Assembly: GCF_052425735.1 (NCBI RefSeq)
Contig: NW_027557518.1
Location: 1 to 64,000, forward strand
From: Oculina patagonica
Taxonomy: Eukaryota
DNA length: 64,000 nucleotides
Direction: 5' to 3'
In this document: positions 1-56,673 of the stretch, piece by piece
Position numbering within the stretch: the first letter of the stretch is position 1
Layout: the number at the start of each line of letters is the position of its first letter
Notes under the pieces: generated by a model
Database searches by the model: none
What the model was told of the DNA's origin: nothing
What the model saw: only the letters and a program-made list of their open reading frames with translations
Program-made: the position numbers and the translations under genes

Positions 1-17
1 CTAAAATCACTGTGTAA

Positions 18-241
18 AGGAGCTACGTCACGGACAACGCATCTTGAAAAAGATGGCAATTTTTTTCAAGTTTGTCGATTGTAATCCGTCTTAATCTTCA
101 TCAGTCAAAACCATCCTTAGTTATTTTTGCGTTTTTATTGCTCCTTTCTTGTTTTTCTATTTTAGAAAACTATTATTTTAAGGTTTCCTTCAATTTGAAA
201 TTAATCAGAAAAATGACTTGAAATATGGTGACATTGCTCCT
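18..241. mobile_element. Non-autonomous TIR element (MITE), Kolobok-like
   Basis: Imperfect TIRs AGGAGCTACGTCAC / GTGACATTGCTCCT, flanked by GTAA and TTAA. The paralogous sequence near 1545-1560 lacks it. Confidence 0.55.
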
Positions 242-245
242 TTAA

Positions 246-1673
246 ATGATAGTAAATGAGTATTTAAGACTTCGTGCTACTAATACGCCATTTTAAAAGA
301 TATATCCCTTTCTAAATTGAGCTGTGGCTTTGCTGTGGAATGAATTTATATCCCTTTTAGGATCTGACTTTAAACATTGAATTTGACCTTTTGATTATTT
401 TGATGCTTTTGTTAGGAAATAACTTACGTACGCCCGCGTTAGACTTTGTGCTCGTTTTCCAAGCTTGCTGGTGACGTCACCTGAATGGGGGCTTTTTACT
501 TACACCACGTGACCCAAAATAGAGTAACCGCGCAGCTGAATAATGAGGTCTTGGAAGTAGGAACTAGTCGGCTCATCGTTACATTGAACTTTTACCATAG
601 GGTCAAGCGACGAAATTTACAAAAAAAAAAAAACAAGAAAAGTACTTCAAAGATAAAGATATCGATTTATTTAGGTCATAGTCCGATACTTAACCAGTAT
701 CCTGCTTATTTTAGTGCTACTTTACCTAAAAGTTACAAGTGTTTGAAAGTGGGCAAATAGTTAGCAACTATTTTATATATATCAAAATAAAAAAGTTGAG
801 AGCAAAATTGTTTATCTTGATTTCATCGCAACAGCATATTTTCTTAGAGAAAATTGATGCGTTGGATAATTCAGGAGAGTTTTTCAGTGCCTTAAACTTT
901 TGGTTACCTTGAAGGGTATTCACCTTTATTCCAGTAAAAATACTCCACATTATCTTTTGTCAGCTGACGAGCAATATATCCAAATTATAAATAAACGATA
1001 ACTAAACACCGTAGGCTACATTCGAGGACGTAGGTTTGAAAAACATCCACCATTATTGTTTTTAATTTTGACTAATTAAAAGCTTTTCAGATCATTCACC
1101 CCCGCTTCTAAATGTTTGACCTCGCGTGTATTTGATTGGCTGGCTGTGTAAATATTCCAAGAATAATTTTAAGATGCTTTCGATTATCCAATTCGTACTG
1201 TAAACACAACGAAAGCGTCTAAATATAAAGTAAATGGCTAGTTGATAACTTAATTAGAATTTAATTAACCCGACTAAGTTAGCGTGTCCTTTCATATGTC
1301 GGATATGGTTTTCTGACAAAATTTAAATTTCCTTTGCTAGAAGAAGCTTTACATGTGGTTTTCTCCTACTTATAATGGAAGTTTTTATTTTGTAATAATT
1401 ATTTTTTAGGTTTGAAACAATAAGTTGTCAAATTGATTCTCAGTCTGATTTAAATCACCGAAAGTTCAAAAGATACAATTATCATTCTAAATGATGATTT
1501 ATAGTTTCAGAAAAAAACAAACCATAACCTTTGAAATTATAATCAGTGTGGCAGATGATAGTAAATAAGTATTTAAGACTTCGTGCTATTAATACGCCAT
1601 TAAAAATATATCCTTCTCTATCCTGAGCTGTGGCTTTGCTGTGAGATGAATTTATATTCCTTTTAGGATCTGA
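246..1673 (+). repeat. Diverged ~120-bp direct repeat (246-368 and 1555-1673)
   Basis: Both copies contain ...GTATTTAAGACTTCGTGCTA...TGAGCTGTGGCTTTGCTGTG...CCTTTTAGGATCTGA. Confidence 0.8.
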
Positions 1674-32400: not shown

Positions 32401-33330
32401 ATGTCTAACTCCACTAGAAACAGCCAAACGCTTGAAGAATTCATTTGCTCGACAAACCCAGACAATAAGCCTGCAATAATATTCCTTTCAGCTTTCAACT
32501 TCCTTTTTTCCATCATTGCTTCCATTGGTAACATTTTGATTCTGACTGCCCTTCAAAAGCCGTCGACTTCTCTCCATCCTCCATCGAAAGTTCTGCTGCG
32601 TTGTCTAGCTACATCAGATCTCTGTGTTGGCATCATTTTACAACCAATGGTCGCCATCCTGTTTGTCTCTGTTGCAAACGAAAATTGGACTCTGTGTGGC
32701 CCCATCTTAGGCATAAGCTTTCTGTTAGGTGTAGTTCTCTTCGGGGTGTCTCTGTTGACATTAACGGCAGTGAGTGTGGAAAGGCTTCTCGCTTTCTTGT
32801 TGGGGTTACGTTTTCGACAAATTGTAACTGTTAGGAGAACTGTTGCTGTTACAGTTTGTTTTTGGGTCATAAATTTCGCTATCGCCGCGTGGTGTTTTTG
32901 GAATTATTTTGTCTTTCTGTGGTACGGATGTGTGCTGATACTTACATGTGTATTAACCTCTACCTTCACTTACACCAAGATCTATGCCGATCTTCGCCGT
33001 CACCAAACAAGAGTGCAAGACCAATCTTCCCAAACACAACAAAACCAAGGGGAAGTTCCACTGAACATTGCTCGATACAGAAAGACCCTTTCTAGTTCAC
33101 TGTGGATACAGTTTACATTACTGGCGTGTTACCTTCCGTATTGTGTTGTAACAGCATTAGCAACCTTCACCGGTTTAACGCCGCCTCTTGTCCTGGGCTG
33201 GAGGTTTACAACATCTGTTGTATTCCTAAACTCTTCTTTAAACCCTTTCCTTTATTGTTGGAAGATCGCAGAAGTAAGACAAGCGGTGAAAGACACAGTC
33301 AAACAACTGTTCTGTTGTTCGTCAAGTTAG
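32401..33330 (+). CDS. Class A GPCR copy 4, 309 aa, type B
   Basis: Same motifs as the other copies; intact ORF. Confidence 0.96.
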   Translation: MSNSTRNSQTLEEFICSTNPDNKPAIIFLSAFNFLFSIIASIGNILILTALQKPSTSLHPPSKVLLRCLATSDLCVGIILQPMVAILFVSVANENWTLCGPILGISFLLGVVLFGVSLLTLTAVSVERLLAFLLGLRFRQIVTVRRTVAVTVCFWVINFAIAAWCFWNYFVFLWYGCVLILTCVLTSTFTYTKIYADLRRHQTRVQDQSSQTQQNQGEVPLNIARYRKTLSSSLWIQFTLLACYLPYCVVTALATFTGLTPPLVLGWRFTTSVVFLNSSLNPFLYCWKIAEVRQAVKDTVKQLFCCSSS

Positions 33331-34962: not shown

Positions 34963-37900
34963 TCACACAATATTAACATCATCTTGCTGCCTTTCCCTGT
35001 CACCATTTCTCAGAAAGCCCGCAGCATTGGCATCTACGCATGCGCGGTACCCTTCACAGTGATACGCCGAGAACATCCGGGATGTGAAGAACTGATTGGC
35101 AGTGCTGTGCTGAGGAAAGAAGTTACAACATATCTTGGACAACCCCTGACAAGCTTGTCGATGACAGCACTCGCAACAGCATAGGGTCAACTTATTGACG
35201 TCATCTTGTGTGAAAAACACACCGTCGGAAACATCAGAAGGATGCATATTAGTCAAACGATTTCCATCCATTCCGTCACTGACGCCTTGGTCCGGATCTC
35301 TTGGTGCGACAAGGAGAATTTCTCCTTCGCCTCCTTCACCGAATTCATCGCTTTGGTAATGAACCTTGAATCTGAAAATGCAACAAAGGGAACATTTCTA
35401 AAGGGGATAATTTAAAGACTATAATTATTCTGTACTTTGCATTGATATGTAAGACAGAGCTGTTCCATGAGACTACCGTGAAGTCAGTTCTTTAGTTATG
35501 GAGAAGAACCTAGAAAGAATAAATTTCCAAATCATACAATTCACGTATCAGCCGGCATGTCATGAAGACGGTAGTTCAGGGATGCCTCTTGCACGGTTCA
35601 TGGGCGGAAAAATAACGAATCACGGACACAGATATCAGTTTTTATATTTATATAATTATATTTGAGATATTGCAAAATCACCCAAACGAAGAAAAAAAGT
35701 ACAAACTTGTAATAACGCGGCTTTCCTCCGGCCTTTGGTCTCACAAACTTCTCCAAGAGATCGAAAGTAACATCTTGGCCGTCTTCACTTAGAAACGAAC
35801 AGTTAAGCTTGGTACGAGCAAGCATCAGTGCATTCAAAAGGCTGTCTCCGTAGTATTGGTCGTCATTCTTATAACCACCATCAACAACAACAATCCTTCG
35901 TAGCCTTCTCTTCAACAGCGGTAAAATAGCAAGGTTTTCAATATGGCCTCCATCGCTAAGCAGCAGTATAGGTGGCGGCATTGGGCCAGTGTTTTCCTTG
36001 GAAAACATTTCTCTCACAAAATAGACGAAAGAAATGTGCACGATGAACCACCTGAAAAATAATATTGCACGAAAAACGCATTTCACTAAGAGAATGTTCT
36101 CTTGCACATGCTGACTCATGATCGGAATTGGACTAGATAGCGCATGAGGTGCTCTTGTCATATTACGTCAACAAGGGAGGTAATAGTGAAGAAATTATTC
36201 AATATGACACGAGCGTGGGACAAAGAAAAAATCTGAGTCACCGGCGGGAATCGAACCCATGGCCTCCCAGATACCGGTTGGGCGCTCTAACCAACTGAGC
36301 TACGAGAGACTCGTTGTGAGCTGGGCTATTTACTAGGTTGATATATGACACGCGTCCTGCATACTGCTAGGATCAGCAATGTCGAAATCATCGAATGTGT
36401 AGTAAATAATAAAGATAGTAAATTTCAAGCTCGGTGAGGTAATTTCAAGGGAGGTAATATGTTGCAAGTTGTGGCAACATGTTGCGCAAAGTAGACATGA
36501 GTTCAACTTTGTGCAATACGTTGTCGCAACTTGCAACAAGGGAGGTAATACGGGCAGCAACTTGCAGTGCAACATGTTGCAAGACAAGTTGAAAGAAAAT
36601 ATTGCCCGTATTGCGGGGCCTTGAACGGGGAAAAACCATATATGGCAACACGTTTGGAAACGCGTGCACACACAGTTGCAGATGACGAATTCAACTACGC
36701 GACCACGTGCTAAGGCAAAAAAAAAACAGAACAACATTTTAATCTAGCCACTTTCCACTAAAGGTTCAAATAAGGCGTGACAGGTGGAAGACATGCTGTT
36801 TTCTCAGGCTGCATACTTTTAAGACCTTCATAGTGGATTCCCAATTTCTCAGAGAACCTCCAGGGGAAACTAAAATGGGTTCGAGAAATCGGGAGTGCGA
36901 TAAATCAAAAGTTAAATTGCAGTGTTTGAAGCAAATCTAAGAGAAATGACTTTTTTCGCGTTATAGGGGTTCGAGAAATCGGAATTACACTAATTGTTTT
37001 TATTCTAACCCCTACCTGGCTATTTTCTCCCACCATCCTGGTTGTTCCGCTCCTGTGTCAATGAGAGCGATGAAGACCAGTACAAGATGTACAGCGAAGA
37101 AGATTATTACTCCTATTTTAACGTACGGTTCTGCATCATGGTAAAGGGCCGGTACAACTACTAATGGCAGACCACGCAGAACATACACAAGACACGGAAG
37201 GAATATCTGTGAAATTGCAAAATAGCAGCAGTTATCAGGCAGGGTACAAAAGTACAAAAATCTGGAAATAGGCCTTGTCACGGTTTTCGACGCCATCTTG
37301 ACGAGTAGGCAAAGCGGGTAGAAATTACAGTGTTTGTATGGGAATCCGATGGCAAATATCTTTTACAAAAATTGAATTTTGGACAACTTATGAATTATAA
37401 AGTTAAGATACTAGGCAAAAGTTTTTATTTGCCGAGTTTGAAGGATGTAGCTGGGCTAGAAAGCGTTCAGTTACCTTTTTAAGAGAATGTCTCCTTTAGA
37501 TCCACAAACTTAATTTGGCTCAGTAAATAGAATTCGCTCAAAATCCCTCCAGTAATTTCTTATTATAAGTAAGTAACAAATATGGAATTAGACTGGAGAA
37601 AAATTGTTTTCTTTATGAAATCTGGATGAAAACCTTTTACACCTTCTGGTGGCCTCGATGGCCATTGGCCGGATCGTGAAATTTGGTAAAGTCCAACCAT
37701 TCGCCCTAATACAAATATTGCAGCTACATCGCTTAAATACCGATACTTGTGAACATCAAGCCTTGGCCTTTTAAACTGGATGAACCGCATTGAAAAACTT
37801 TGCTTATCAAGAAAGAGACGAGGATCTAAAGTTTGGCTATTTTGGATGTTAAAGGCCAGCTCAAATTTCCCTTAACTTTATGTAGTAAAATATCAAAAGT

Positions 37901-40900
37901 GGCTCGTACTCACAAGTTAAACTGCATATCAGCGGCAAGCTCCATCCTTCCGCTCTGAGAATATGTAAAAATATTTGGCCGTTCTCTACTCCTTCGGTTG
38001 TTGACAAGGGGCGAAACAAGTGCTACTCGGCGGATTTCGTCATGTTGCCATCTTAACAATTCGAACCAACTTCAGTACCAAAAAGACGAGAATTTTGTTA
38101 AATCACTAGTACATTTATCTCGCAGTGAACGAAGAAATCACCTTGCAATCCGCTTTTATCTGAACGGAAATTATCACGTCGAGATAGTCCATTTTACAGC
38201 AACTTTTACAGCAACATATCGATCTTCTACTGTCAGCCATCTTGGTTTTAACATCCGCTGACCAGTTTAGTCGGTCAGTATAAAACACGGACTGCGGACT
38301 ACGGACTACGGACTACGGACTGGGTATAAAACACGGACTACGGTATAAAATGCAGACTAAGCATGCAAAATGCTGCCAAACGTGACCTGATGTTAAAAAT
38401 AACTAGAAGCAAGGCTGAATAAACTGAGCATCAAAGTTGTCTCACCTTCTCGCCTAGCTCGATAAAGTTAGCCTTTTTCCTACAGAAAGCCTGCTCGTAG
38501 ATTACAGCAAAGTACTGTCAAAACACATTAAAATCCCTCCAATTGTGAGGAACTTAAAATTTGTGTTTGTTTCATTCGCTTTAGTCTTTGATTCTTGGAT
38601 CGGAGTTGCAGTGGAGACTCGACTCAAAACTTAATATAATGTTGTCGATTTCATTACAGATAACTCGAACCTCCTGCTAAACTCGAACTTTCTCCGATCC
38701 TCCAGGTGTTTTTTCCCTAATAATTTAGTACCCTTGCTAACTCGAACTCCCAATATCTAAAACGTTTTTCGATCTCCTTTGAAGGTTCGAGTTAGTTATC
38801 GTTATTCAACTGCATATCTGGCCATCCTCAAGCGGCAGGCACGTGGGAGTTTGACAAACAACCCTAATTTGCATGACAATGAAAACCGGGTTGCCAGTAG
38901 AATTTTTTAACTTCTTCAGTACTTGAAATTTCGTACCTCTTTTTTGGTATTACAGAAGTCCGAAGGGTGTTGAATAAGCGAATGGCGAAACGTTAAAACA
39001 AACCGTGTGTTAGTGTAGCGAAAACAAGCAAAATTCGGCAAAATTCGTACGTGTCTGCCACGTGAAGCCAGACGATAATCCTCTCAACATTCGAGTTTGG
39101 AACCGGAGTTTTGAATCGCAAAATCGAGCTGCCGTTTTCAGTCTGTGTCCGAGCCAAGTGGCCCATACAGCCGGAGCTTATCCCGGTTTCCGTAGCATTA
39201 AGCGACTAGGAGTGTTGCTACTCCCCCTGGAAGGGATACTAGTCCACCGCAGGGTTACCCCCCAGCAGTAAATTCGCCGGTACCCATTTATACACCTGGG
39301 TGGAGAGAGGCACTGTGAGAGTATTGCATGCAGCCTCTTTTCGATTCTTGTTTCAAGTTTATCCGTGGCTCCACCCGATTTTTTTTTATTTTCCTTGAAA
39401 TTTAAAACTAAACGTTTTGAGCTCATTTGCATAAATTCATAAAAGTTGTTCTGCAATGTTCCCTTTCGTAAGCGGTCAACTAGATTTTTCAGGGGCTGTC
39501 CGTCGCTATTTTGTGCAGGCCTTTATCAAATATTTATTACCCATAAGGCAAATTGAAGAAAAAGTCACGCGATTTCCAGGTTCCCTAAAACTACCATCCC
39601 ACGCAGTCCTTTTTTACTGACAGAAGAAAAAAATGCGGCGGTTTAAGGCTTGAAAAAATTAATTGTAATATCCTAGACATGGGTGGATCTAGTGGCGTTA
39701 GATTGGGTGGCTAGCCACCCCCTTGATCCAAAAATTAACAGAGAAACATGAAAAAAATATAAAGAGAGTGAAACTCGATAAGGTGTTTATAAGGTGAAGG
39801 GATATTTTGCTCAGTATCAGTACAAGTGTCCTAGGTTGAACGCCCGTCTATTGTGAGTTAAAGCAAAGCATTGTCCGTCGGTGGCATCTTCTCAATGAAC
39901 GTTCTTAAGACAGAAAAGTTCAAGCTTAGTTTGGTTAAGGAACAAGGACGAACTCTCTTTGTCATAAACGATAATAACCAGCCGTTCAGTTTTTCGGAAG
40001 TGCTCACAGTCGGCATCAAAGGACTCAATCGCATGGGAGGCTAAAGAGGGAAGTGTTTCTGTTTCCTCTTTAAATGCCTGTCAAGTCTGCCCTTTCCCCT
40101 AAATCTGGATGTGATGTTACAACCAGACAAAGCGTGGAGCTAGGCAGAGAGCTTTCTAGGTACAGATGGAGAAATCGTAACTGGTTGTGTACTTATACCT
40201 GGTTGGTTCTCAGTTGGAAACTGGAGGAGACTAATGCCGGTAACAAGAAAAGAGCCGCATTTTGAAGGCTATCTAAGGCACCAACAGTGAACAGACCTTT
40301 CGCAGGCAAGGGATACAACTCCATCCTCGTCAAAGTGCTCGCACTCTTCAAGCTGTGTGACCCTGACATAGGAAATAGAAATTTCCAGCTGGTGTAAATG
40401 CTGGATGATCCGCTTGCATCTCGTCAATCTATGCATGTTCAGGTCAATGTAGACAGGCAGAGGCGGTTCACACTCCCTAAAGTGCCTTGTTTCTGTATCG
40501 GATTCCTTTGATTTTTTTCTATGTGTTGTAGACAATAGGCTGATCAACGGTAAGGCATGCTTTGGACTCGTGCTTATCTTTCTTTTTCAAACCGTCTCCA
40601 TTGAAAATTAAGAACATTAAGGTTTTGAGGCTAGATGGTAACGACGCTTCTTGACTATTCTCTGGAAACGATCCATAAATTTATATGCCTCGTTGCTGAA
40701 AATGTATTTTCTTATTATTGAAGCTGCCGTAGCTTGACCAAAACCTTATGCGACCTCTGTGTAATCTCGTTTCTTCAAGGCTTCTTTAAGCATGTTCCGC
40801 TTCCCTGGGCGGCCACAAACTACAAGCGCATAATTACCATAATAAACATTTTAGATTACTGCATCTAAAAATTGAAATTTTAGCGAAACCTTCAACAATG

Positions 40901-43900
40901 TCTTCAATTTATATATATTTTTACAACATTTAAGCATAGAACTGCAAATTACTTACGGAGTAGAGGAATATTTGCTTCTGTCCAACTGTCATTGCATCAA
41001 TTCAAAATGGCGTGGTAGCGGTGCTTGAGAGTTTGTTCGTGGTAAAAAACGTTTAGCAAATTTTGCAAATTTCAGGAAAAAATTCAGGTGGAGCCACGGA
41101 TAAAATTATTTAATAGTCATTAAAGAATCATTCTGCAAAGTTTGGTGCTTTTATCAACCATGTAACGATTTCTCCAAACATTTGCGCTAAGCGACCTGAC
41201 TATACGTTTTCGACAGTAAAAGGTAGCTTTTCACGTTGGTGATTTCCCTCAAGGTTTCTTCTCTTTTATTTTTTATTTTTTAGTTATCTCACGTATTGAC
41301 GCTATAGATATCCGAAGTAGTTATTTGTCTAGACGCAGAGAAAAAATTCAAGTTGAAAGAGTGCAGATTGAGCATTGCGTCTTCTTTTGAAAACCAAGCA
41401 CTTGTATATGTCGCAAATCCAATATGGCGGCGGAAAGCTCGCAAGTAAATTCTCGGAATCTCACCGTATATTTCTCAGAAAACATCCAGTGGAACGGACG
41501 AATGTTTTGAAGGCGAACCAGTCAAATTTCAAGAACAATGAGAGCGTTAATTAAGGTAAGCCTCTTCTTTCACAGATACCGAGCAGAGCATTTTTGAGAG
41601 AATGCAGTGCCGTAGCAAGGGTAAAATAACTGGGGGGCACGCAATCTAGAGGCTTGGAAATGCTATTTCCAGCGTTCTCCAAGAGCTATTTGTGATTTAC
41701 GCAAATCGCGAATTATTTTCTTCCTACACTGTCTCAGCAAACCAATGCACATTGAAGAGAGTATAACACTTGCAACGTCAATTACAAAATAGAAAACCGA
41801 CTGTCTCTGTATCTTGAAACCAGCAAATGTTTCACTTTTCAGAGTCATCATAGTGAGTTCGTAGTTATCAAACTGTCTGAGTTGCCTTAGAGACAAACGT
41901 AGACTTCATCGGCAGGTCGTTTTTTGAAAACTTCCCAAAGTTTAGTTCGTTTAGTTTATTTTTTAGCTGTTTAATATTGTTGTGCCTCACCCTACGTACG
42001 TTAAAAAATGAAAAGAAGTACAAATGTTATTGTTTCAAACCTTTTGGGAGATAAAATTTTATTTTCAACATTTCATACGGGTCTGTTTTTACTTTTTGGG
42101 AAAAAAACTGGGGGGGGGCACGACCCCCCCCCGGCCCCTCCCCTTGCTACGGCACTGGAATTGTATTTATCGTGAAAGAAAAAATAAATTTTGATTTCGC
42201 TGTGAATCTTGACGAGCAGTTTGTGTGCTTTTCTTCGTGCCGCCTTCAACAACCGTCGATAAAAAAAGTCGTTGTTTCTAGCCGTGGTTTGCATTTAAAC
42301 GTATTTTATATGCTCAGTCCGCATTTTATACCGTAGTCCGTATTCTATACCCAGTCCGCAGTTTGAGTCCGCATTTGTGTTTATACCCAGCCCGTAGTCC
42401 GCAGTCCGCAGTCCGCAGTCCGCAGTCCGTGGCAAAGTCCATGGTGTTTTATACTGACCGACTAAACTGGTCAGCGGATGTTAAAACCAAGATGGCTGAC
42501 AGTAGAAGATCGATATGTTGCTGTAAAAGTTGCTGTAAAATGGACTATCTCGACGTGATAATTTCCGTTCAGATAAAAGCGGATTGCAAGGTGATTTCTT
42601 CCTTCGCTGCGAGATAAATGTACTAGTGATCGAACAAAATTCTCGTCTTTTTGGTACTGAAGTTGGTTCGAATTGTTATGATGACAACATGGCGAAATCC
42701 GCCGAGTAGCACTTGTTTCGCCCATTGTCAACAACCGAAGGAGTAGAGAACGGCCAAATATTTTTACATATTCTCAGAGCGGAAGGATGGAGCTTGCCGC
42801 TGATATGCAGTTTAACTTGTGAGTACGAGCCACTTTTGATATTTTACTACATCAAGTTAACGAAAATTTGAGCTGGCCTTTAACATCCAAAATAGCCAAA
42901 CTTTAGATCCTCGTCTCTTTCTTGATAAGCAAAGTTTTTCAATGCGGTTCATCCAGTTTAAAAGGCCAAGGCTTGTTGTTTACAAATATCGGTATTTAAG
43001 CGATGTAGCTGCAATATTTGTATTAGAGCGAATGGTTGGACTTTACCAAATTTCACAATCCGGCCAATGGCCATCGAGGCCACCAGAAGGTGTAAAAGGT
43101 TTTCCTCCAGATTTCATAAAGAAAGCAATTTTTCTCCAGTCTAATTCCATATTTGTTACTTACTTATAATAAGAAATTACTGGAGGGATTTTGAGCGAAT
43201 TCTATTTACTGAGCCAAATTAAGTTTGTGGATCTAAAGGAGACATTCTCTTAATTTCTCATACACTTGTCTATAATTTTTCCCGCGAACAGCGTCAATCA
43301 TGCGGAAAAAAATATAGGCAAATAATATATGACCGACACCTTCGGGACCGTGATTTAGTGTCCGTAATACAGAATGTCCGCAATAGCTGGAGTTATTTTC
43401 AGTAATTTTTATTTGCCGGGACTTCAACTCCGTCCGTAATAACGGGGTGTCCGTAATAGCGAGGTGTCCGCAAGGCGGGAGTTGACTGTACTAATTAATT
43501 ACTAGTACACATTGCCTTCATATGCTTTGCTCCGAAAGGTTGTCTTTTTTAATAGGCCTTAACATACAGAGGACACGCAACCTGCTTGCCCCATGCTTCG
43601 CGCTCGCCTTTGAGAGGAAGGGAATGCCTAGGAAGTCTAGGGCGTGTTACCTACGTTCAGGAGGCCAACATACCCTCAATGTACATCCTTCCCTTTTCAC
43701 CGATTTAACGTCGCTTATCATGGTGGCACCCATTTCGAGTCCAAGAATTGTATGAAGACGAGTTAGCCCTTTAACCGAACGATCATATTTGCCCATATGA
43801 GTCGAAAGCGCCGCCGCCGAGGTAGCCATAGCATCTGATAACTTTATATCCTCGGGCTCCAGTTTGCCTTTGAACTGTTCCTTGTCTGGGTCACGATCAA

Positions 43901-45647
43901 TACGCTCTATTTCTGTGGGCGACATTGTCAAAAGTTCATAACTGTTCTGGGACGCCTCGCTTTTCTTCCAACGGTTAACCACAATGTTGGCCAAGTATTC
44001 AGGCTTCATGTTTTTTAGATCTGCTAGTGTCAGTGGTCTCGCCTCCTCTTCACCCGCTTTATTAGCCAGCGTCAGACATGTCCAGAGAGTGCACACATCG
44101 TGCAGCTCAATCCCGGAACATCCAGATAGTCCCAGGCCCTTGCGGTGATAAAACGCTCTCTGAAGCCTCCATCTGGAAAAGAACAGTCAATGTTTTACGT
44201 TCCATGTAAGGTATCTCCTACATAGTCGCTTTTCGAGCTCTATTTGCACTGATCGTAAAGAAAACATGTTTTCATTTTTGCAGATGATTGGCTGAAAGAG
44301 ACAATACCCTTTCCATAAATGTAGCCTACGAGCAAGCTCATGTTTAAGTATGCACGCGCGAGTAGCGAAGCCGTATGAACGAGTCCTCTGCCCAAGAGTT
44401 CTCCTTGCTGGCCTTCTTCGCTGGCCGACTCGTCTACTCAGCCTTTATTCCCACATTTTTCTGCTCGCAAGCAACAATGATTGGTTATATATATCCAGTC
44501 CCAGACTTTAAAGACAAAACTGGCAAATCCACTGTGTGTGCTATAATAAATCGAAAGGATGAATAGGACTGCACAGTTCTACACGCGTTCTGTCTCTTAT
44601 CTAATGGTCTTTTTGACAAACGGTCTTTGACTGATCAATATACAAAACCTTTATTTACCTGTTATAAATGTGCACAAGTCTCTCATTCATTGCAGCCACT
44701 ATAGGGACAATCCACAAGACAAAGCCGGAGGCGAAGAGAAACCAATTAAATAGCTTGTCGGAAAATGTGATGCCATTTCTAAGTTCTTGGCCCTCGTACA
44801 CCTTCAATTGCGTCACATAAGAATAAAAGAAAATAATCAGGACATAGGATATTTTGCTTCGTAGCAGGGGAAGAACCAACCACACTATTACGCCAACAGG
44901 CACAACCAGGATCTCTGCCCACAAAGGGATTTTATAGAAGGAATCATGAATGCCAAACGGGATGACAGTGAGCGCCAGCAACGCACCAAACGTGTATTGG
45001 GTGAGACGAACGAAAAGCCTCTGAGGTGGAGAAAGACGTGTTAATCGAACAAGGACATAAAATGTGATAAACATGAGGAACAGAACAGCGAATAGTATAA
45101 AAGTGTAGATCCTATCAGTTCCCTGTCGAGCGAGGCAATGCGTTAGGATGGCCTGGACCTCAGACAACTCAGCATCAGTCATGTAACTAGATACTACCGC
45201 TGATGCTTCCGCCTCAGCATCGCAGTCCACTTTGTCACGTAGGTACTTTCCAAAAAGGAGGTCGATCATGAAGGCTACTGGGCATGCGTACGATCCCCAT
45301 ATGATCAATGGTTGCACGAAGGTGACCGTAATAATAAGGCAAGACAAAATAATTGTGTCGAAGATTCCTTGGAATGGCTTCTTCCAGTTGCAGACGTATC
45401 CTGTCCTATCTCTCATGTGGTCAAAGAACTCCTTGTGCCAATCTTTGCGGGCTTCCCCGTCGCTTCCTTGCTGTTTTTCCTCTCTGTATTTCCAGTCCAG
45501 GTAGGCTGTACCTGTATAACCACCCCCGGATACACAGCTCAAGTAATCTACCTCTACCTCACTCTCTAACAGTCTGCGCAAGACTCCAGAGCAGAATGCC
45601 GCTGACCGAATACCACCGCCAGAAAACGCCAAGCCAGTACTAGACAT
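34963..45647 (-). CDS. Lipase A: multi-pass membrane patatin/cPLA2-like phospholipase, 810 aa; complement(join(34963..35371,35707..36051,37016..37206,43674..44172,44659..45647))
   Basis: All introns are GT-AG with consistent phases (2,0,2,2), giving a 2433-nt open frame. Motifs: SGGGIRS oxyanion, YLSCVSGGG (Ser40), LSDAMATSAAA, LSDGGHIENL (Asp593) and FPQHSTANQFF. Exon 1-4 lengths equal those of lipase B. Confidence 0.9.
36186..36445 (-). mobile_element. tRNA-derived repeat in lipase A intron 3; tRNA-like head 36235-36312
   Basis: Homologous to 13880-14110. Flanked by a 14-bp direct repeat CAAGGGAGGTAATA (36172-36185 and 36446-36459), a possible TSD; a third copy at ~36537 weakens that reading. 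Confidence 0.75.
39147..39322 (-). mobile_element. SINE, 3' portion (same family as 28951)
   Basis: Contains the reverse complement of CTCTCCACCCAGGTGTATAAATGGGTACCGGCGAATTTACT. Confidence 0.8.
39850..40800 (-). pseudogene. Degenerate fragment of a transposon-associated protein gene
   Basis: Frameshifted pieces read RHFRECEPPLPVYIDLNMH...LEISISYVRV, KGLFTVGALDSL and SFLVTGISLLQFPT. I recall these motifs from a widespread invertebrate mobile-element protein family. Diverged ~100-bp inverted repeats (39322-39420 / 41045-41140) bracket it. Boundaries are approximate. Confidence 0.55.
41605..42157. mobile_element. MITE with 17-bp TIR CAGTGCCGTAGCAAGGG (hAT-like ends)
   Basis: Perfect 17-bp inverted ends; no clear TSD. 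Confidence 0.7.
43335..43490. mobile_element. Truncated Tc1/mariner-type MITE end
   Basis: TGTCCGTAAT motif repeats ending in GAGTTGACTG+TA, similar to the end of the 19611 element. Confidence 0.55.
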
Positions 45648-46530
45648 GGTCACTACAAATACGGAAAATGTATACTGCATTTAATTAAGGAGATTTATTT
45701 TATAATAAAAGAATACAAATGCCATACGAAGCCTCTAAATGAAGCCCTCTCAAGATCTCCTACGAAGTTTCATGACCTCAGAACAAATAACTGACATTTC
45801 ACGATATATCAAGATCCAAAAAAGAAAATTTTTTGATCTTGAACCAAATTAGCCCCAGGAAATTACACAAAAAGCAGCTAAAATTGTCGAGGATAGCTCT
45901 GATTGTACCAACAAACGGCGAGCAACAGTCCGTATGCACGCCTGTCAAACAGTGTTTGATAGTCTCATAAACAAAACGATAGGGAGTTTGCGCAATATTT
46001 TCCTTTAACAGGAAGAAATTCTTGGCAAGGAATGTTCTTCCTGCTTTTCAGCAGCAGCAAAACTAATAACGCTTGCCACCTGCACTGTAAACAATATGAC
46101 GAAATCTGTCTCTTACCAACACATCAGGAGTCATTTGAATAACAAATCAGCTGGGAAGCCGTAAACTTGTGCTCAATTTTTACACCAAATTAACTGGTTT
46201 CACCTGGTCTAGGAAGAAAATACATTAATGGCTTTGTATATAATTTTTGGGTGTACTTTGTTTTGGTTTAGTTTCTGTGTTCCTGTAATTTGCGACATAC
46301 ATCTACAAAAGTGTAAAACCTTTCAAATTCCCACTTATTCTATTCATAAACTATCGAACTCTCTTTTGCCCATCGAACTGATCAGCATGAACTAAGTAAA
46401 TGGTCATTCGTCCGATACAAAACAAGCATAAGGTGGCTTCGCACATCAAATGTAATATTCCAATCCCACGGAAAACTGTTTCAGTACCTAAGGCTTTTGA
46501 AAGAAGCAAGTCAAATGAAAATCTACTTAC

Positions 46531-47779
46531 CCATTCACACTGGAGGTTGGAAGCGGTTTACCGGTGATCTTATACGTGCAGCCTTTTCGCGCATACCTAG
46601 TTTCGAACTGAGGCAAGCTAGCGTGTCATATTTCAACTTTTGACGTATGAATTTTTTATCTCCGACTTTCGCAAATACTGCTTCGTTATCTTTAGCACGT
46701 ACTTGATGGTATGTTCTGTGTTCCTTCTCCAGCTGTTAATTTATAGATTCTTCTCTTCTTCTCTTATCTTGAGGTATCCACATGAGAAAATTAAATTGTT
46801 GCACAATGCTATAAAGCAGCCTTGAAAATACTGTAAAATTCCAAAAATACGCCCTGGGCTTATAGTTGTTCAACGCGCCTATCAGATGGGCTTATTTTTG
46901 GGGAGGGTTTGTATACGGTGGGCTTATTTTCGGATGGAAATTTGCATTTCAAAAACCCTTGAGTTTCTACTAGTCTTACAGGATGCTGTGTTTAAGCATG
47001 TTTTGATGCATAACAAGAATACTGCATGGTGAAACACTTTAAACACAGCGATAAGAAACCCAAAACAAGACATACAAATAAAAACGTAACAGGTCTCTAT
47101 ATTCCATAACGACGTAAATTTGGGGTGACTGACGTCGACCAAATGACCTTTCCATTCCCCATTACAGCTGAGTGGAATCACCCAATCAGAATTAATGCTT
47201 TATTGTCGGTCCAATATTTTCACAGTAAGGTTTTAGAACACGGCTGTAAAAGAAATGATTCATTGCTTATTCTCTTTTCCTCGATGGTTCTGGGACGGAT
47301 GTAATAGGGGACGGCGGGTTGGTCGCGATGTTCTTTTGAGAAACGCATTTAAACTGAAGAAATCTTACTATATCAACGAAAACATAAATTGATAAATTGA
47401 CAATTTTTTCTAAGAGAACTCATTATCTGCTTAACACTACTTTAATACTTCTGTATTCTAAGCAGGCTGCTGTTTGGCTGCAGCCTAACCCCTTTATCCC
47501 TACTTTTGTCAAGGAGGGGCCAAATTTCGATGCTCCACTTGATCTATGCAAACGGCTTGCGATAAACTCTTAAACAACTGAGGTTCAATTTTTTCTCTAT
47601 CAAAAGGTGCGAGTATTGCAACTGTATTTTGGAAGCTATTTAAATTCGGAGATAAGAAATTTACACGTCAAAAGGTGAAATATGAGACTCAAGCTTGCCT
47701 CGATTTGAACGCAGGTTTCTTTCAAAAGACAACACTCATAACACATTGGAAAACCGCTTGTTACCTCCAGTGTAGTTAG
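46531..47779. promoter_or_regulatory. Divergent promoter region and putative non-coding first exons of lipases A and B
   Basis: Inverted homology between 46520-46670 and 47640-47800. It includes conserved GTAAGT donors (46530 on minus, 47780 on plus) and conserved ACGTCA and AGATAA motifs. Acceptors lie 5 nt before each ATG. Confidence 0.6.
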
Positions 47780-49056
47780 GTAAGTCTTTGATAGATTTTC
47801 TATTTAAATGCCTCTTCTTTGAGGAAAACGTAATGTATTTTAACAGTTTACCTGAGATACAATATTATTTTTTCATGTGTGGGGCCACCTTATCCTCGTT
47901 TGTATATGAAAGTGTTAAAGTGTTGTTAAAGGCGGTTACGCACTAAGCTTCGAGATATAGCTATTTTTTAAGCATGCCACTGAAACAGAGAAAGCAAATA
48001 TTTTAAATGAACTGAACATGTTTGATATGACGATAGGCTTGAACCATTTACTCAGTTTCATGTCGATAGGAAAAAAGACCGGAGCAATAACCTATGAATA
48101 GAATTTGTGGGAATTTTAAATGTTAAATATACATTAAATGGATCTTAAAATGAGCAGTTATAAAATTACTCAATGAACTTGCCCATTACCTCGATAAGCT
48201 TAGATATTTGTTTCGCAAATTATAAGAAGAACGATGGTCAATCTTGGCTAACTGAATTTGTTTGAAGTTTGCTAAACTAAAACAAACGCCCAAAACTACA
48301 AACACACAGAAAAAAAAATTGATATCGTCTTTAAAGACCAGGCAAAGCCATTTAATTTGGTTTAAAAATTGAGCACAAGGTGAAAACTTCCCAGTTGTTT
48401 ATATAAATTATTAAAGCACTTATGTGTTGGTGACCGACCGCAGACTTCGAAATATTGTTTATATAGAGCAGGTGGCGGCAAACGTCATTGGTTTAGGAAG
48501 AACATTCCTTGCTAAGAAATTTGCTCCCTTGCAAACTGCACTCGATCTTGCGCAAGCTCCGCGTCGTTCTAATGTAGCCGAACAGTTGAACGAAATGGCA
48601 AAACGCACACATATGGACGGAGAGCTTGCCCTGTAGAATCAACATCGATCAGAACTCTCCTTAACAATTTTTTACTCTCCTTAACTATTTAGAACAACAA
48701 CAACAGCCATTACAATTGGTCATTTTATGTTGCCAGGAAAAGAAAATAGAAATAATTACAGCATAAATTAAAATAACATGTATATAAGAAAACTAAACTA
48801 CTCAGAATAGTAATAACTAAACCAGTCGAGTAGTAACAAAGTTAAAGCGCTCAGACTAGGTTGTACATGTAATTACTAAGATACTGAGGGAGATAGAAAA
48901 CAGACTTTAAGATACAACAAGGAAATGAAAATAGAAATTGAAAAGTTAATGTCCACCACTATTCACCTCCACTTCGGTGAATAATTGTTAAATATTTCTT
49001 GCTATATAATAAATCTCCTTATTTCAGTATTCATTTTCATTAATTTTATAGTGACA

Positions 49057-50881
49057 ATGACCCGCACTGGCTTGGCCTTTTCTGGCGGTGGTATTCGGTC
49101 AGCGGCATTCTGCTCTGGAGTCTTGCGTAGACTGCTAGAAAGTGAAGTAGAGGTGGATTACTTGAGCTGTGTGTCAGGGGGTGGTTACACAGGCACAGCC
49201 TACCTGGACTGGAAATACAGAGAGGAAAGACGGAAAGGTGGCGATGGGGAAGCCCGAAGAGATTGGCACAAGGAGTTCTTTGACCACATGAGAGATAGGA
49301 CAGGATACGTCTGCAACTGGAAGAAGCCATTCCAAGGAATCTTCGACACAGTAATTTTGTCTTGCCTTGTTATTGCGGTCGCCTTCGTGCAACCATTGAT
49401 CATATGGGGATCGTATGCATGCCCAATAGCCTTCATGATCGACCTACTATTCGGAAAGTACCTACGTGACAAAGTGAACTGCGATGCTGAGACTAATGCG
49501 TCAGCGGCAGCATCCGCTAACATGACTGATGCTGCGTTGTCTGATATCCAGGCCATCCGAAGACATTGCCTCGCTCGACAGGGAACTGACAAGATTTACA
49601 CCGTCATACTATTCGCTGTTCTGTTCCTCTTATTTATCTCATTTAATTTTCTTAATCGATTAAACCGGCTTTCTCCACTTCAGAGTTTTTTCGTCCGCCT
49701 TAGTCAGTACACGTTTGGTGCGTTTCTGCTTCTCACTTCCATTCCGTTTAGCATTCATGACTTCTACAATAATATCCCGCTCTGGGCAAAGATCCTGCTC
49801 GTGCCTTTGTGCATAATAGTGTGGTTGGTTCTTCCCCTGCTACGAAGCAAAACATCCTATGTTATGATTATTTTCTTTTACTCTTATGTTACTCACTGGA
49901 AGGTGTACGAGGGAAAAGAAATTGCAATTGGTATCATGTTTTCTTACAAGCTATTTCATCGGTTGCTTTTCGCATCCGGCTTTGTCTTGTGGATTGTCCC
50001 TATAGTGGCTGCATTGCATGAGAGACTTGTTCACATCTATAACAGGTTAGTAAAGGTTTCCTATACTGATGGGCCAAATACAGTTTCTTCAAAAGACCAT
50101 TATATAAGAGAAAGAACGCAGAAAGAACGCCAAACAGCTGTGTAGCCCTTTTCGATATGTTTTTAGCACACACTGTAGCTATGTTTTTAGCACACACTGT
50201 AGCTATGTCAGTTTTCCTTCTAGGTTTAGAATTGTATATACAAGTATAAAATCATGGCAGACTACAAGTAGGCCAAAGCCTTGAAATACACGAGGTGTAA
50301 ACGAGGCGGCGAGCGACGTGGGTGGGCGATGAGAAGTCTGGGGCGGACGACTTCTTCTTGCGGCTTCGCCACTCGCGCGCGTATTCCCTTAACGTGAGCG
50401 TGCTCGCAGGCTACAATCATGACAAATTTACTGTCTCTTTCAGTCAAACATCTGTTGTTAGAACAACAAATGTTTCAACCTGTTGTACGGAATAGAGCCT
50501 TGGACTTTCAACATGTTGAATGGCATATTTCAACATTCAACATCACACCATACACTAATCAACCTTTGTTAAACAGCAGTAGCAACATTTGCAGTTGTTG
50601 CACAACAAATGTTGAACCCTGCATCATTGGCTTAAATAGATTAAATAAATCTTTTTTCCAATAATTTTACTCTCGGCTTAAGACATTGTAACTAGCTATT
50701 TTTAATTTTTTTTAATTATTTTTATTATCTTTTTTCTTACACTAGTTCCCATTGTTTTTATAATGTAATTTAATTATTGTCATGCGCTTTTTACATGAGC
50801 CTCTGTCTCGGATAGAGAGGGCAACCTCATCCCGCGCCATGACATTAATTGATTGATTGATTTATTGACTGATTGATTGAC

Positions 50882-50930
<49 letters not shown>

Positions 50931-53900
50931 CATTCATTCATTGTTTGATTGATAGGAAGTTATTGCGTACGCTCTTTGGCCCCGTCACGCATTCGTCTCC
51001 CAATAACCTTACCTCATGAGCATAGTTACTTACCTCAAAACATCGACCTTTCTTTTTGCAGATGGAGACTTCAGAGAGCGTTTTATCACCGCGAGGGAGT
51101 GGGACCAAAAGGATGTGCAGGGATCGGGTTACAGGACACCTTTGCTCTGTGGACATGTCTATCGTCGACAAACCAAGGGATTCCAGAGGAGGAGAAACCC
51201 TTGACACTTGCAGATCTGAAAGGCATGAAGCCTGAATACTTGGCCAACATTGTGGTCAATCGCTGGAAGAAAAGCAAATTGTCCCAGCACAGCTATGAGC
51301 TTCTGACAATGTCTCCTACAGGAATTGAGCGTATAGATCGCGACCCAAACAACAAACAGTTTAAAGGCAAACTGGAACCGGAGGATGTGAAGTTATCAGA
51401 TGCTATGGCCACCTCGGCGGCGGCGCTTTCTACTCACATGGGCAAATATGATTACACGGTTAAAGGGCTGACTCGTCTCCATACGATTCTTGGACTCGAA
51501 ATGGGTGCCACCACGATAAGCGACATTAAATCAGTGAGAAGGGAAAGTTGCACATTGAGGGTATGTTAGCCTGCTTAACGTATGTAATACGCACTAGTTC
51601 TTCCCACGGGCGAGCGGGTTGCGTGTCCATTAAATGTTATTCGGTAATTAACGCCATGAAATTTCGTGCCAAATCCGGTTAGCGAAAATGGAAAGACAGG
51701 TCGACATTTGGTCCTACACAGAGCTTTTAACATTAATAAAGTTTTAACAAGCCAAGCTCTATCAAAGAGAGAGTACAACTTTTCCTGGAAATACTTTACT
51801 TGCAGGATTGTATTTTTGCTGCCGGGGTTAGATGCTAAAAGGACGTGCCTAGAACATGGACATAGTTACTTTGTATTTAGATTTATCGGTCCATATATAT
51901 TAAAGATGCAAAAGAGACCTTACTTATTGTCATACATTAGGAAATATGTTCAGCTCTAGACAGCATTTAGTCCACAAAACCCTCATATGCTTTGCTTCCA
52001 GCTCTAAGCTGTTTTCGTTTTAATTTCTAGAGTAATTGGTACCCAGCCTGATAATTCTAAGTTGTTCCATGATTAATCATTCTATTTCTTTTAATTGCTA
52101 ATTCACAGATATTCCTTCCATGTGTTGTGGATGTTCTGCGTTGTCTGCCATTAATAGTTGTACCGGCCCTTTACCATGGTTCAGAACCATCCGTTAAAAT
52201 AGGAGTAATAATCTTCTTCGCTGTACATCTTGCACTGGTCTTCATCGCCCTCATTGACACAGGAGCGGAACAACCAGGATTGTTGGAGAAAGTAGCCAGG
52301 TAAGGGTAAAATAAAAACAATTACTGTAATCACGATTTCTCGCGCCCTCGAGTTTTCGAACCTGCTGATAATTTGAAAAAAAAAGTTTCCCTTGGATTTG
52401 CTTCAATAAGTCCCCGGGGGGGGGGGGGGGAGTACTTGCAGTATACATGACGGGGGAGTCCGACGGAGCTTTATATTGCGAACCCAAAAAAATACCTGAC
52501 ATCAAAATTTTCTACCCCAAAAAGTATAAGACCTAGCACCTCTATACTAATTTATTCAATAAAACAGACTTTAAGATCTAAAAAAATATATGAAAGATTT
52601 CTTGACCCAAAAAAATACCGAGGGTGTAAATTTTCAACCGAAAAAATACGTCGGACCTTCCCGTCATGTATACTGCAAGTACCCTCCCCCCCCCCCCCCC
52701 TGGGAATAAGTCAAACACTGCAATTCTTCCTCCGATTTCTCGAATCAATTTTCGGTTTTCTTGGAGGTTTGAGAAATAGGGACTTCACTCTAAAGCACTA
52801 AAACGAATGCACATTGAGAAACAAACATCTATTGTACCTGCCTGTCACGCCCTCAGTCCCTCCCCTGCTCGAGAGCAACTTCGTTTCCAGGGTACCTTAG
52901 TCTAATCCCTGAACTCTTCTTCCCCGCCTTATAAAGGGGTTAAACCCACCTGATTTCAACCTCTATAGAGACTATATAGGGCGGGAAAGGAACAGGGACT
53001 GGACTACGGGGTCATAGGAACGAGGTTGGCTCAAACGACAGATTCGCGCGGAAAAATTCCACACTGGTAAAGAAAAACGACATGTGCACTACACTATTAT
53101 GGGTCAAAATAAGTTATTCGTGTATTTTATTTTTTTAGGTGGTTTATCGTACACATTTCTTTCGTCTACTTTGTGAGAGAAATGTTTTCCAAGGAAAACA
53201 CTGGCCCAATGCCGCCACCTATACTGCTTCTTAGCGATGGAGGCCATATTGAAAACCTTGCTATTTTACCGCTGTTAAAGAGAAGGCTTCGAAGGATGGT
53301 TGTTGTTGATGGTGGTTATAAGCATGACGACCAATACTACGGAGACAGCCTTTTGAATGCACTGATGCTTGCTCGTACCAAGCTTAACTGTTCTTTTATA
53401 AGTGAAGACGGCCAAGACGTTATTTCCGACCTCTTGGAGACGTTTGTGAGACCAAAGACAGGAGAAAAGTCACATTATTATAAGTTTGTAGTTCTTTTCT
53501 TTGCTTGGGTGATTTTACAGTCTATACAACATCTCAAGTATAATTATTTAAATGAGAAATTGAAAGTAGTATTAAGGTGTACGGTAGGTACAAGGATTCT
53601 GAAACTGTCGCACCTCTTTTCTGATGATACACTTCTATGAGACTAATTTCATGTTCCCGCTCAGGGTTTGGGGATAGGGTGGTACGGGATGGAATATAGA
53701 AGAAATGCCAAAATGGACCCCAAGAAATTAAAGGTTGCCACGCCCGTTTACGAGAAGTATCCGCGTGGCTAAATGGAGTTTACAGGCTACAATCACCAGA
53801 AAATATCAACCTACAGTTAGGGAGATTATCCACTTATAGAAAGTATCCTACTTAAACTCTATGTACAGGCACTAAACCCGGCTTCAACTTCCAAGACTGA

Positions 53901-54649
53901 CTAAGGTCTCTTGACAGAATTCTGTTTTCTATGATTTTTGTTCAATGAACCGGTGGGAAAATGTTGAAACGAAAATTACAATTTTGCACTATATGACCCC
54001 ATTCGTTGAAAAAAAAATAATATTTCCGGGTGAGGCTCAACGAGATTTAATACTTAACAGTACAGGCAGCAGCAATGGGATGTAGAAAGCTGGAAAAGAA
54101 AACAAGTAACATACACGTTTTCTTTGCTTGCCAACCAGCTTAAATGCTCTCCGATATAACTGCAGAGTACCAATAATTTTGGTCTTAAAACTAAACCCTT
54201 GTTAATGTTCCTTTTGTTGCTATTTCAGATTCAAGGTTCGTTACCAAAGCGATGAATTTGGTGAAGAAGGCGAAGGAGAAATTCTACTTATCGTACCAAG
54301 AGATCCGCAACGTCACGGTGGCGTCGGTGACAGAATGGATGGAAATCGTTCGACCAATTTGTATCCTTTCGACGCACCCGACGGCGTGTTTTTCACACAA
54401 GATGACGTCAATAACTTGACTCTCTGTTGCTGCGAGTGCTGTCACCGACAAGCTTGCCAGGGGTTGTCCAAGATATGTTGTAACGTCTTTCCTCAGCACA
54501 GCACTGCCAATCAGTTCTTCACATCCCGGATGTTCTCGGCGTATCACTGTGAGGGCTACTGTGCATGCGTAGATGCCAATGCTGTTGCCTTTATAAAAGA
54601 TGGTGAAAGAGAAGAGGAGCAAAATTATTATGTTAATATTAATGTGTGA
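49057..54649 (+). CDS. Lipase B: multi-pass membrane patatin/cPLA2-like phospholipase, 814 aa; join(49057..50045,51062..51560,52109..52299,53139..53483,54229..54649)
   Basis: GT-AG introns with phases 2,0,2,2 and a 2445-nt open frame. Same catalytic motifs and intron positions as lipase A. Confidence 0.92.
50848..50940 (+). repeat. (GATT)n microsatellite
   Basis: About 20 imperfect GATT units. Confidence 0.95.
52413..52704. mobile_element. MITE, 292 bp, 8-bp TSD AATAAGTC
   Basis: TIR CCCG(n)AGTACTTGCAGTATACATGACGGG. Exact TSD at 52405-52412 and 52705-52712. Confidence 0.9.
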
Positions 54650-54880
54650 CAGAAATAACCCGGTAGAAAGAGTGTACGCGCATCATGTGATGTCGCCTGT
54701 GAACCTTGCCAAGTGTTTCATAACAGTGCAAAAAGAAAGAAGGAGGTCAAGATTCGGGAAGATTGCGAAAAACGAGTTGAAAAAATATTGGGCCAACTTT
54801 CCAATACACCCTATTCGTGACGGAGCACCTTTAATTATTTTTCAAATATTTATCTAGTCAGTTTTCTGAAAGTACTTTAA

Positions 54881-56556: not shown

Positions 56557-56673
56557 TTTATTACAACGCTAATTGTAAGAACATGTAAAAAACATGTCAA
56601 ATGTATTAACCACTTTTACAGTTTCTTTCTTTGTAAAAAACATGTAAATGTCTTTACTAAATCATGTAAAGAA

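Follow-up and report, generated by a model that had tools for sequence, protein, structure and literature searches.

Positions 34963 to 54649 of a 64,000-nucleotide stretch of the genome of the coral Oculina patagonica (contig NW_027557518.1 of RefSeq assembly GCF_052425735.1, positions 1 to 64,000; this whole stretch is called the window here) raise the question of how an animal gene with introns comes to encode a patatin-like lipase that resembles bacterial proteins and has hydrophobic segments between its two catalytic residues. The original prediction, made from the sequence alone, described the region as one gene for a bacterial-style enzyme that was either horizontally acquired or patchily retained. 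We found two genes there. Each of them probably encodes an integral-membrane acyl hydrolase. The enzymes belong to a family with many bacterial members and, within it, to an old eukaryotic branch that was patchily kept among eukaryotes and amplified in Oculina.

The characterised patatin, PNPLA and cPLA2 enzymes that we met in this work are soluble or peripherally anchored, and their regulation consists largely of reaching the membrane. This membrane-inserted family instead builds about eight predicted transmembrane (TM) helices into the catalytic fold. It occurs widely among bacteria, but none of its members seems to have been investigated. In the literature, no paper describing the family or its architecture and no characterised member was found. 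A paper on gene expansion in corals deals with a different phospholipase/carboxylesterase family, PF02230 (PMC12314368).

Two divergent genes for patatin-like proteins

The span that had been predicted to be a single gene holds two divergent paralogues in head-to-head arrangement. Each has five exons, and the start codons at 45647 (minus strand) and 49057 (plus strand) are 3.4 kb apart. Splicing of the plus gene, with GT...AG at each intron, gave an open reading frame (ORF) of 2445 nt that encodes 814 amino acid residues. In this protein, Ser40 lies in the motif DYLSCVSGGG and Asp593 in SDGGHIEN, with a spacing of 553 residues. Hence, the 814-residue product, the Ser40 in SCVSGGG and the Asp593 of the prediction were reproduced exactly, and the proposed distance of about 550 residues was confirmed.

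The minus gene has the same layout and encodes 810 residues. Its product is 100% identical over the full length to KAL9981897.1 and also to residues 12-821 of XP_078355307.1 and XP_078363494.1, which are O. patagonica records named 'uncharacterized protein'. The plus and the minus protein are about 82% identical to each other (81.8% by BLASTP of the plus protein against P0161), and further Oculina records match the plus protein at 96-98% identity. In the analyses described below, the plus protein was represented by P0161 (KAL9981897.1, the record with 100% identity to the minus protein) and by P0162, whose identity to the plus protein is 96%. The numbering of P0162 and of its model is that of the plus protein of the window plus 6. 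An exact look-up of P0161 in public assemblies gave no match. We conclude that both genes are real coral genes that were annotated independently with the same splicing. Databases already list their products as uncharacterised or 'PNPLA domain-containing' proteins, and models of relatives are available in AFDB.

The bacterial-looking motifs and the contig, an unplaced scaffold of 118 kb, might raise the suspicion of contamination by a symbiont or a bacterium, of a chimeric sequence or of an assembly or annotation artefact. The probability of such an artefact is negligible. The genes contain spliceosomal introns, and the G+C content of the window (34-44%, on average about 39%) is fairly even with no compositional break at the lipase genes; no runs of N were present. 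The first exons of the lipase genes are identical to copies at 25.32 Mb of a chromosome scaffold of 30 Mb, which lie between coral genes for G protein-coupled receptors (GPCRs). For exon 1 of the plus gene, this copy is at G000:C3:25328403-25329389 in the same genome and is 100% identical. In addition, orthologues are found in the cnidarians Nematostella and Exaiptasia. The GT-AG introns, the coral records and the predicted fold described below are all in line with the proposed intron-containing animal gene for a transmembrane-interrupted protein of the patatin/cPLA2 fold.

The catalytic motifs and the predicted fold

The plus protein begins 8 residues before the oxyanion loop SGGGIR, which occupies residues 9-14. 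The nucleophile serine is placed in a strand-turn-helix (strand 41-44 and helix 47-66 of the model), and its motif is C-V-S-G-G in the coral proteins and T-V-S-G-G in bacteria, with the first Gly of G-x-S-x-G replaced. In an alignment of 93 bacterial and eukaryotic sequences, the S, G, G, G and R of the oxyanion loop are invariant. In the numbering of P0162, the invariant residues are S15, G16, G17, G18, R20, S43, V45, S46, G47, G48, S454, A456, D599, G600, G601, H602, N605 and P767. A histidine directly behind the catalytic D-G-G (His602 in P0162, His596 in the plus protein) was present in 93/93 sequences, and so was the asparagine three residues further on. We know of no role for this histidine in other patatin or cPLA2 enzymes.

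P0162 was modelled with AlphaFold2 (AF2) from the 93-sequence family alignment, resulting in a mean predicted local distance difference test score (pLDDT) of 88.7 and a predicted template modelling score (pTM) of 0.89. Structural alignment by VIA-align gave the highest score with cPLA2-alpha (1cjy_B; Z 18.6, 364 residues aligned, model 2..807), followed by PlpD (5fya_B; Z 18.3, 234/255 residues at 3.2 A, model 7..805) and GIVD cPLA2 (Z 18.2, 381 residues aligned). CapE (Z 16.9), Patatin (Z 15.0), iPLA2-beta (Z 14.7), VipD (Z 13.7) and ExoU (Z 11.9) were also matched. Every aligned range spans the model from about residue 2 to 812. Since the superpositions span the whole model, the N-terminal 90 or so residues and the C-terminal half are predicted to form one complete patatin/cPLA2 alpha/beta core. 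The N-terminal part carries the SGGGxR loop and the Ser40 elbow, whereas the C-terminal part of about 480 residues carries the AMAxSAA helix, the Asp593 strand and the FPxHST motif. For the assembly of the Ser-Asp dyad, the superposition ranges provide indirect but strong evidence. The original prediction had proposed to ask a structure prediction whether the two residues meet, and the AF2 model suggests that they do, with both parts joined into one fold.

When the model was searched with Foldseek, cPLA2 was the top match in the PDB, and Spo1, fungal PLB and cPLA2 enzymes were the top matches among the reviewed proteins of Swiss-Prot. The membrane-inserted architecture was found in no reviewed protein of this search. 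With cPLA2 and fungal PLB (PLA2c; 1CJY, 5IZ5), which are its best structural match, the coral protein shares the SGGGxR loop and the Ser-Asp dyad, and in both a large insertion sits immediately ahead of the strand with the Asp. Of the solved structures, cPLA2 gave not only the highest Z but also the longest alignments (364-381 residues). The insertion forms the cap in cPLA2 and is a predicted membrane hairpin in the coral protein, so that the two may correspond in place but differ in kind. However, cPLA2 enzymes of group IVA, B, D, E and F have a C2 domain with Ca2+-driven recruitment, whereas the coral protein has permanent predicted TM helices, no C2 domain and no PF01735, and its sequence similarity to cPLA2 is not significant (E 0.061). 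The patatin and PNPLA proteins (1OXW/4PKA, PlpD 5FYA, CapV/CapE, iPLA2-beta, ExoU and VipD) have in common with the coral protein the alpha/beta core (Z 10-18), the GGxR motif, the serine and the DGG. In contrast to the coral protein, the classical members have a contiguous soluble domain with a canonical GxSxG, and their membrane association, where present, comes from separate domains such as an autotransporter barrel, an N-terminal anchor or a C-terminal bundle.

At the sequence level, the Pfam Patatin profile (PF01734) was matched only by its first 52-55 of 191 positions. P0161 scored 28.1 bits, P0162 28.4 bits and exon 1 of the plus gene alone 27.4 bits (positions 1-53, E 4.5e-6), at a gathering threshold of 27.7. 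No Pfam match to C2, ankyrin or PLA2_B (PF01735; E <= 0.01 to 1) was obtained for the coral proteins, which agrees with the predicted lack of a C2 or ankyrin domain. In searches against the solved structures, the exon pieces gave no match, and the family profile gave matches by hydrophobic bias and cPLA2 at E 0.061, in its N-terminal part.

Predicted membrane insertions and topology

The Kyte-Doolittle scan and the AF2 helices together point to about six membrane helices in residues 91-325 and to two more at about 493-545, in addition to amphipathic helices. The original estimate of 8-10 hydrophobic segments between the dyad residues is therefore matched by about eight membrane helices plus the amphipathic ones. 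The long hydrophobic helices of the model are at 97-124, 185-207, 213-241, 248-269, 272-289 and 303 to about 325, and the hairpin is formed by 499-523 and 528-549, all in model numbering. Amphipathic helices were located at 560-581 of the model.

From the model we infer that the first insertion makes six passes and follows two helices behind the nucleophile. The second would be a two-pass hairpin just before the Asp strand, at the position of the cPLA2 cap. Since the number of passes is even in each insertion, both catalytic halves would be on the same face of the membrane. The short loops predicted on the side of the catalytic domain hold Arg and Lys, and the opposite loop holds two N-x-S/T sequons in the plus-type protein. 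By the loop charges (positive-inside rule), the catalytic domain probably faces the cytosol.

A widespread bacterial family with the same motifs

Bacterial proteins of 630-1500 residues from Methylomonas, Flavobacterium, Bradyrhizobium, Shimia and many metagenomes share the five motifs and their order with the coral proteins and have a membrane block behind the nucleophile. The motif series is GLAFSGGGIRS, DYLS[CT]VSGGG, AMAxS[AG]A, SDGGHxEN and FPxx[ST]TxxQ. When one genome per bacterial species was scanned, at least 596 loci in about 12 phyla were confirmed. Among the taxa are Alpha-, Beta- and Gammaproteobacteria, Verrucomicrobiota, Acidobacteriota, Gemmatimonadota, Planctomycetota, Nitrospirota, Nitrospinota, Myxococcota, Bacteroidota and Desulfobacterota. 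The motif series had been assigned in the original prediction to an uncharacterised family of large bacterial membrane patatin-like proteins, and this assignment proved to be right.

Uncharacterised bacterial proteins of about 700-1300 residues that are named 'patatin-like phospholipase family protein', such as those from Methylomonas sp. MV1 (P0267), Flavobacterium defluvii (P0248) and Bradyrhizobium centrolobii (P0337), resemble the coral proteins in the five motifs, including SDGGHx[ED]N, in the multi-helix insertion after the nucleophile and in matching only the first third of Pfam Patatin. The bacterial family differs from the eukaryotic proteins by a Thr, sometimes a Ser, before the nucleophile, by a gap of 70-86 residues between the AMA and the Asp motif, which leaves it without the second hairpin, and by the lack of CCCxCCH. 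The two bacterial loci that were inspected have ordinary chromosomal neighbourhoods with no obvious partner gene. Neither NCBIfam nor PADLOC has a family model for the coral or the bacterial proteins, a result that lends no support to a role in a known defence system.

Eukaryotic relatives and phylogeny

Relatives of the coral genes were found in the Scleractinia (Montipora, Acropora, Porites, Stylophora, Pocillopora and Desmophyllum) and in other cnidarians, namely the Actiniaria Nematostella, Exaiptasia and Actinostola, the octocoral Dendronephthya and the scyphozoan Sanderia. Every major cnidarian group that was sampled thus had a relative. Outside the cnidarians, they are present in the calcareous sponge Sycon, the amoebozoans Planoprotostelium and Protostelium, the glaucophyte Cyanophora and the malawimonad Gefionella. 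Further protist entries came from the AFDB fold clusters, among them D2VMP7, F4QCW7 and A0A7S4QL88; two entries of these clusters are from marine-protist transcriptomes. D2VMP7 is presumably from Naegleria and F4QCW7 from a dictyostelid. One further relative, P0145, is eukaryotic, since its contig also carries piggyBac-type genes and genes for reverse transcriptase. No bilaterian, ctenophore or placozoan sequence was among the best 120 matches listed in each of two word-index searches, one with a coral and one with a sponge query.

Two relatives have additional domains. The marine metatranscriptome homologue P0115 (L005:31-3498), which is of the eukaryotic type, has N-terminal EF-hands fused to the membrane lipase. 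By analogy, this would be a Ca2+-sensing arrangement with a logic like that of the cPLA2 C2 domain. The protein P0178 of Stylophora pistillata, annotated as 'Retrovirus-related Pol polyprotein', has reverse-transcriptase-associated domains ahead of a full lipase; its gene model is probably a chimera that spans an inserted transposon.

Unrooted maximum-likelihood trees were calculated from 477-497 conserved columns with 32 eukaryotic rows and either 44 bacterial rows or a set of 56 bacterial rows from about 12 phyla. All 32 eukaryotic rows were on one side of a single branch of length 0.6-0.76, with a support of 100% against the 44 and of 99% against the 56 bacterial rows. The eukaryotic rows were thus not nested within the bacterial ones, the outcome that had been proposed as a sign of horizontal transfer. 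The eukaryotic proteins also have three features of their own. The residue before the nucleophile is Cys, rarely Thr or Gly, as opposed to Thr in bacteria. The gap between the AMA and the Asp motif is 135-184 residues, compared to 70-86 in bacteria, and corresponds to the second hairpin. The third feature is [GC]CCxCCH about 20 residues before FPxHST; the 45 residues that precede FPxHST contain 5-9 Cys, compared to only 0-1 in bacteria. The term bacterial-style hence holds for the motifs and for the first membrane insertion, which are common to the bacterial family, but not for the eukaryote-only features, among them the second hairpin.

A direct transfer from a bacterium into an animal, either a cnidarian or an early metazoan, with later gain of introns and expansion, could account for the five motifs and the first membrane insertion being common to a very widespread bacterial family, and also for the named animal records coming from Cnidaria and Sycon only. 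It is nevertheless very improbable. The amoebozoans, Cyanophora, Gefionella and other protists are on the same side of the 99-100% branch as the animals with no bacterial sequence inside, and the fold clusters hold protist entries as well. The second hairpin, CCCxCCH and the mostly present Cys before the nucleophile are common to the eukaryotes and were not seen in bacteria. We conclude that the coral genes belong to a pre-animal eukaryotic branch and that any transfer predates the animals. Of the two origins offered by the original prediction, the transfer into animals is disfavoured by this branch and by the protist and sponge relatives. An ancient, patchily retained eukaryotic gene is the better fit. 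An animal gene with a bacterial look can accordingly be an old eukaryotic lineage kept in patches and not a recent transfer.

The patchy distribution itself might have come about by transfers between eukaryotes, for example from a protist to a cnidarian or a sponge, instead of by vertical descent with many losses. The very patchy distribution would fit this, and in the trees the sponges, amoebozoans, other protists and cnidarians form an unresolved comb within the eukaryotic side, where the animals are not one group. On the other hand, the trees unite the Cnidaria in a single clade (98-99%), and within it several old lineages of paralogues are common to hexacorals, octocorals and a scyphozoan, which places the gene in the cnidarian ancestor. 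The deeper eukaryotic nodes are poorly supported and do not contradict the species tree either. We regard such transfers as unlikely and prefer vertical descent with patchy retention.

Copy number and selection in Oculina patagonica

The first exon had 41 matches in the 529-Mb genome, clustered on five large scaffolds (24-38 Mb) and on the unplaced scaffold, in agreement with the predicted expansion of the family. The other full-length copies of the first exon were open in 36/36 cases and kept the nucleophile serine in xVSGG. GGGxR was kept across these copies as well, with GGGxK in 2. The nucleophile was thereby retained in 38/38 full-length first-exon copies of the genome.

The ratio of nonsynonymous to synonymous substitutions (dN/dS) between the plus and the minus copy was 0.33 overall; it was lower in the N-terminal catalytic part (0.11) and higher in the two membrane blocks (0.47-0.48). 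These values suggest that the two genes of the window are under constraint, and activity is presumed. The sequences also point to tandem and segmental duplications that multiplied the family in O. patagonica into more than 30 copies, which remain under purifying selection. An intron-free contig of 2,888 nt from a public run carries a single uninterrupted ORF of 803 residues. It encodes a homologue with about 41% identity to the plus protein, and the cluster of this homologue at 90% identity has 356 member sequences. This contig looks like the spliced mRNA of a related gene. The public runs that matched 49000-54700 shared only a small part of its sequence words, and none of them is recorded as RNA.

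The unplaced scaffold that carries the window (C560, 118 kb) repeats part of C3 (25.26-25.40 Mb), where both lipase first exons and one GPCR are 100% identical. This scaffold probably represents a haplotig that was left unplaced, or else a segmental duplication of very recent date, and the copy counts of the genome are therefore slightly inflated.

Proposed mechanism and its alternatives

According to our preferred reading, each protein would be a Ser-Asp acyl hydrolase that resides constitutively in the membrane and takes its lipid sideways from the bilayer, with no recruitment by a C2 domain. The SGGGxR loop would provide the oxyanion hole and a phosphate-binding Arg, as is established for cPLA2 (1CJY). 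The helical bundle and the hairpin may hold the active site at the bilayer surface, would probably shape the entry of the lipid and could replace the cap and the C2 domain of cPLA2. The eukaryote-specific CCCxCCH cluster by the active-site region might be S-acylated or bind a metal. Judging from the model, the most likely activity is that of a phospholipase A or a lysophospholipase. With a confident model at hand, the lipid access, the topology, the DGGH histidine and the role of CCCxCCH become directly testable.

Several points weigh against this reading. Pfam recognises only the first third of Patatin, with scores around the threshold (27.4-28.4 versus 27.7), the elbow is C-V-S-G-G instead of the canonical G-x-S-x-G, and a significant sequence-level match to any solved structure is absent. 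In the model, the short helix 127-142 is ambiguous and may be either membrane-spanning or interfacial, and the probable sidedness depends on the loop charges. With regard to the origin, the absence from Bilateria refers to the best 120 matches listed per search. Since the tree is unrooted, the whole eukaryotic branch might also stem from an ancient transfer out of bacteria.

The replaced first Gly of GxSxG and the invariant, unexplained His directly behind D-G-G could also be taken to mean that the proteins work as transacylases or acyltransferases, or that they are membrane proteins in which the fold serves a purpose other than catalysis. Transacylase activity is known from several PNPLA and cPLA2 enzymes. 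We consider this alternative quite unlikely. The oxyanion loop, the nucleophile serine and the Asp are invariant over the 93 bacterial and eukaryotic sequences, the loop and the serine are kept in all genomic copies, and purifying selection is strongest on the catalytic N-terminal part, which makes a loss of catalysis unlikely. A transacylation would rely on the same dyad.

The membrane acyl hydrolase that we favour would be present in the coral in more than 30 intact and apparently constrained copies. These are a candidate source of lipid mediators or of membrane remodelling, with stress, symbiosis and immunity as possible contexts. Counterparts from bilaterians or model animals were not among the best 120 matches listed in either named-protein search. 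A tandem repertoire of this size makes it tempting to think of stress, symbiosis or immune lipid signalling in corals, but it is no proof of such a role. A more far-reaching proposal is that the family is a membrane-embedded cPLA2 relative of the grade of the last eukaryotic common ancestor, with the cap replaced by or derived from the TM hairpin, and was lost in most eukaryotes including the bilaterians. The 30 or more coral copies would then be a fast-diversifying lipase arsenal in membrane-damage signalling, immunity or cell death, like the patatin effectors of bacterial defence. To this proposal as a whole we assign a low probability.

Exon structure of the lipase genes

Exon 1 of the plus gene (49057-50045) contains the start codon, the SGGGIR oxyanion loop, Ser40 and the first membrane block of about six helices in an open frame that ends with a GT donor. 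Exon 2 (51062-51560) encodes the soluble middle part with the AMATSAA motif, has an AG acceptor and a GT donor with a continuous frame, and is conserved with the minus copy. The eukaryote-specific membrane hairpin, which corresponds to the model helices 499-523 and 528-549, is encoded by exon 3 (52109-52299), and Asp593 in SDGGHIEN by exon 4 (53139-53483), both with AG and GT sites. Exon 5 (54229-54649) follows an AG acceptor and contains CCCECCH, FPQHSTANQ and the stop codon, with the open frame ending at 54649.

In the gene model on the minus strand, exon 1 (45647-44659) and exon 2 (44172-43674) are followed by the 6.5-kb intron 2, exon 3 (37206-37016), exon 4 with SDGGHIEN (36051-35707) and exon 5 with the stop codon (35371-34963). 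The protein encoded by this model is the one that is 100% identical to P0161. In the plus gene, intron 2 has only 0.55 kb. The difference in size is due to an inverted repeat in the minus copy (37479-38288 and 42444-43253), with arms of 810 nt that are 98% complementary and 4,155 nt between them. This is probably a foldback-type transposon or an inverted duplication.

The last two exons of a third paralogue were found on the minus strand at 62235-63868 (ORFs 62235-62723 and 63467-63868). They contain SDGGHIEN, CCCECCH and FPQHSTANQ, and the gene runs off the end of the window. Its exon 1 is located at G000:C560:67205-68179.

Neighbouring genes

Five single-exon genes in tandem on the plus strand (7270-8199, 15991-16920, 25328-26257, 32401-33330 and 59683-60612) are interleaved with the lipase genes. 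They encode rhodopsin-family receptors of 309 residues that match Pfam 7tm_1 at E of about 1e-20 and are 89-100% identical to each other. Receptors of this subfamily and lipase genes are likewise interleaved at G000:C3:25.18-25.40 Mb, whereas the lipase clusters on C5 and C13 have no such neighbours. In the genome as a whole, more than 3,400 first-look candidates belong to the wider GPCR family. A functional link between lipases and GPCRs was considered and set aside, because the close GPCR paralogues are beside the chromosome-3 cluster only; it is simpler to assume that the two were duplicated together as one segment.

Two overlapping ORFs on the minus strand (56616-57061) encode a repeated peptide unit of about 40 residues (…FTCFQTGPLCQFP…HVSKQAPFVNF…), which indicates a tandem DNA repeat in the interval from the plus lipase gene to the GPCR gene that follows it.

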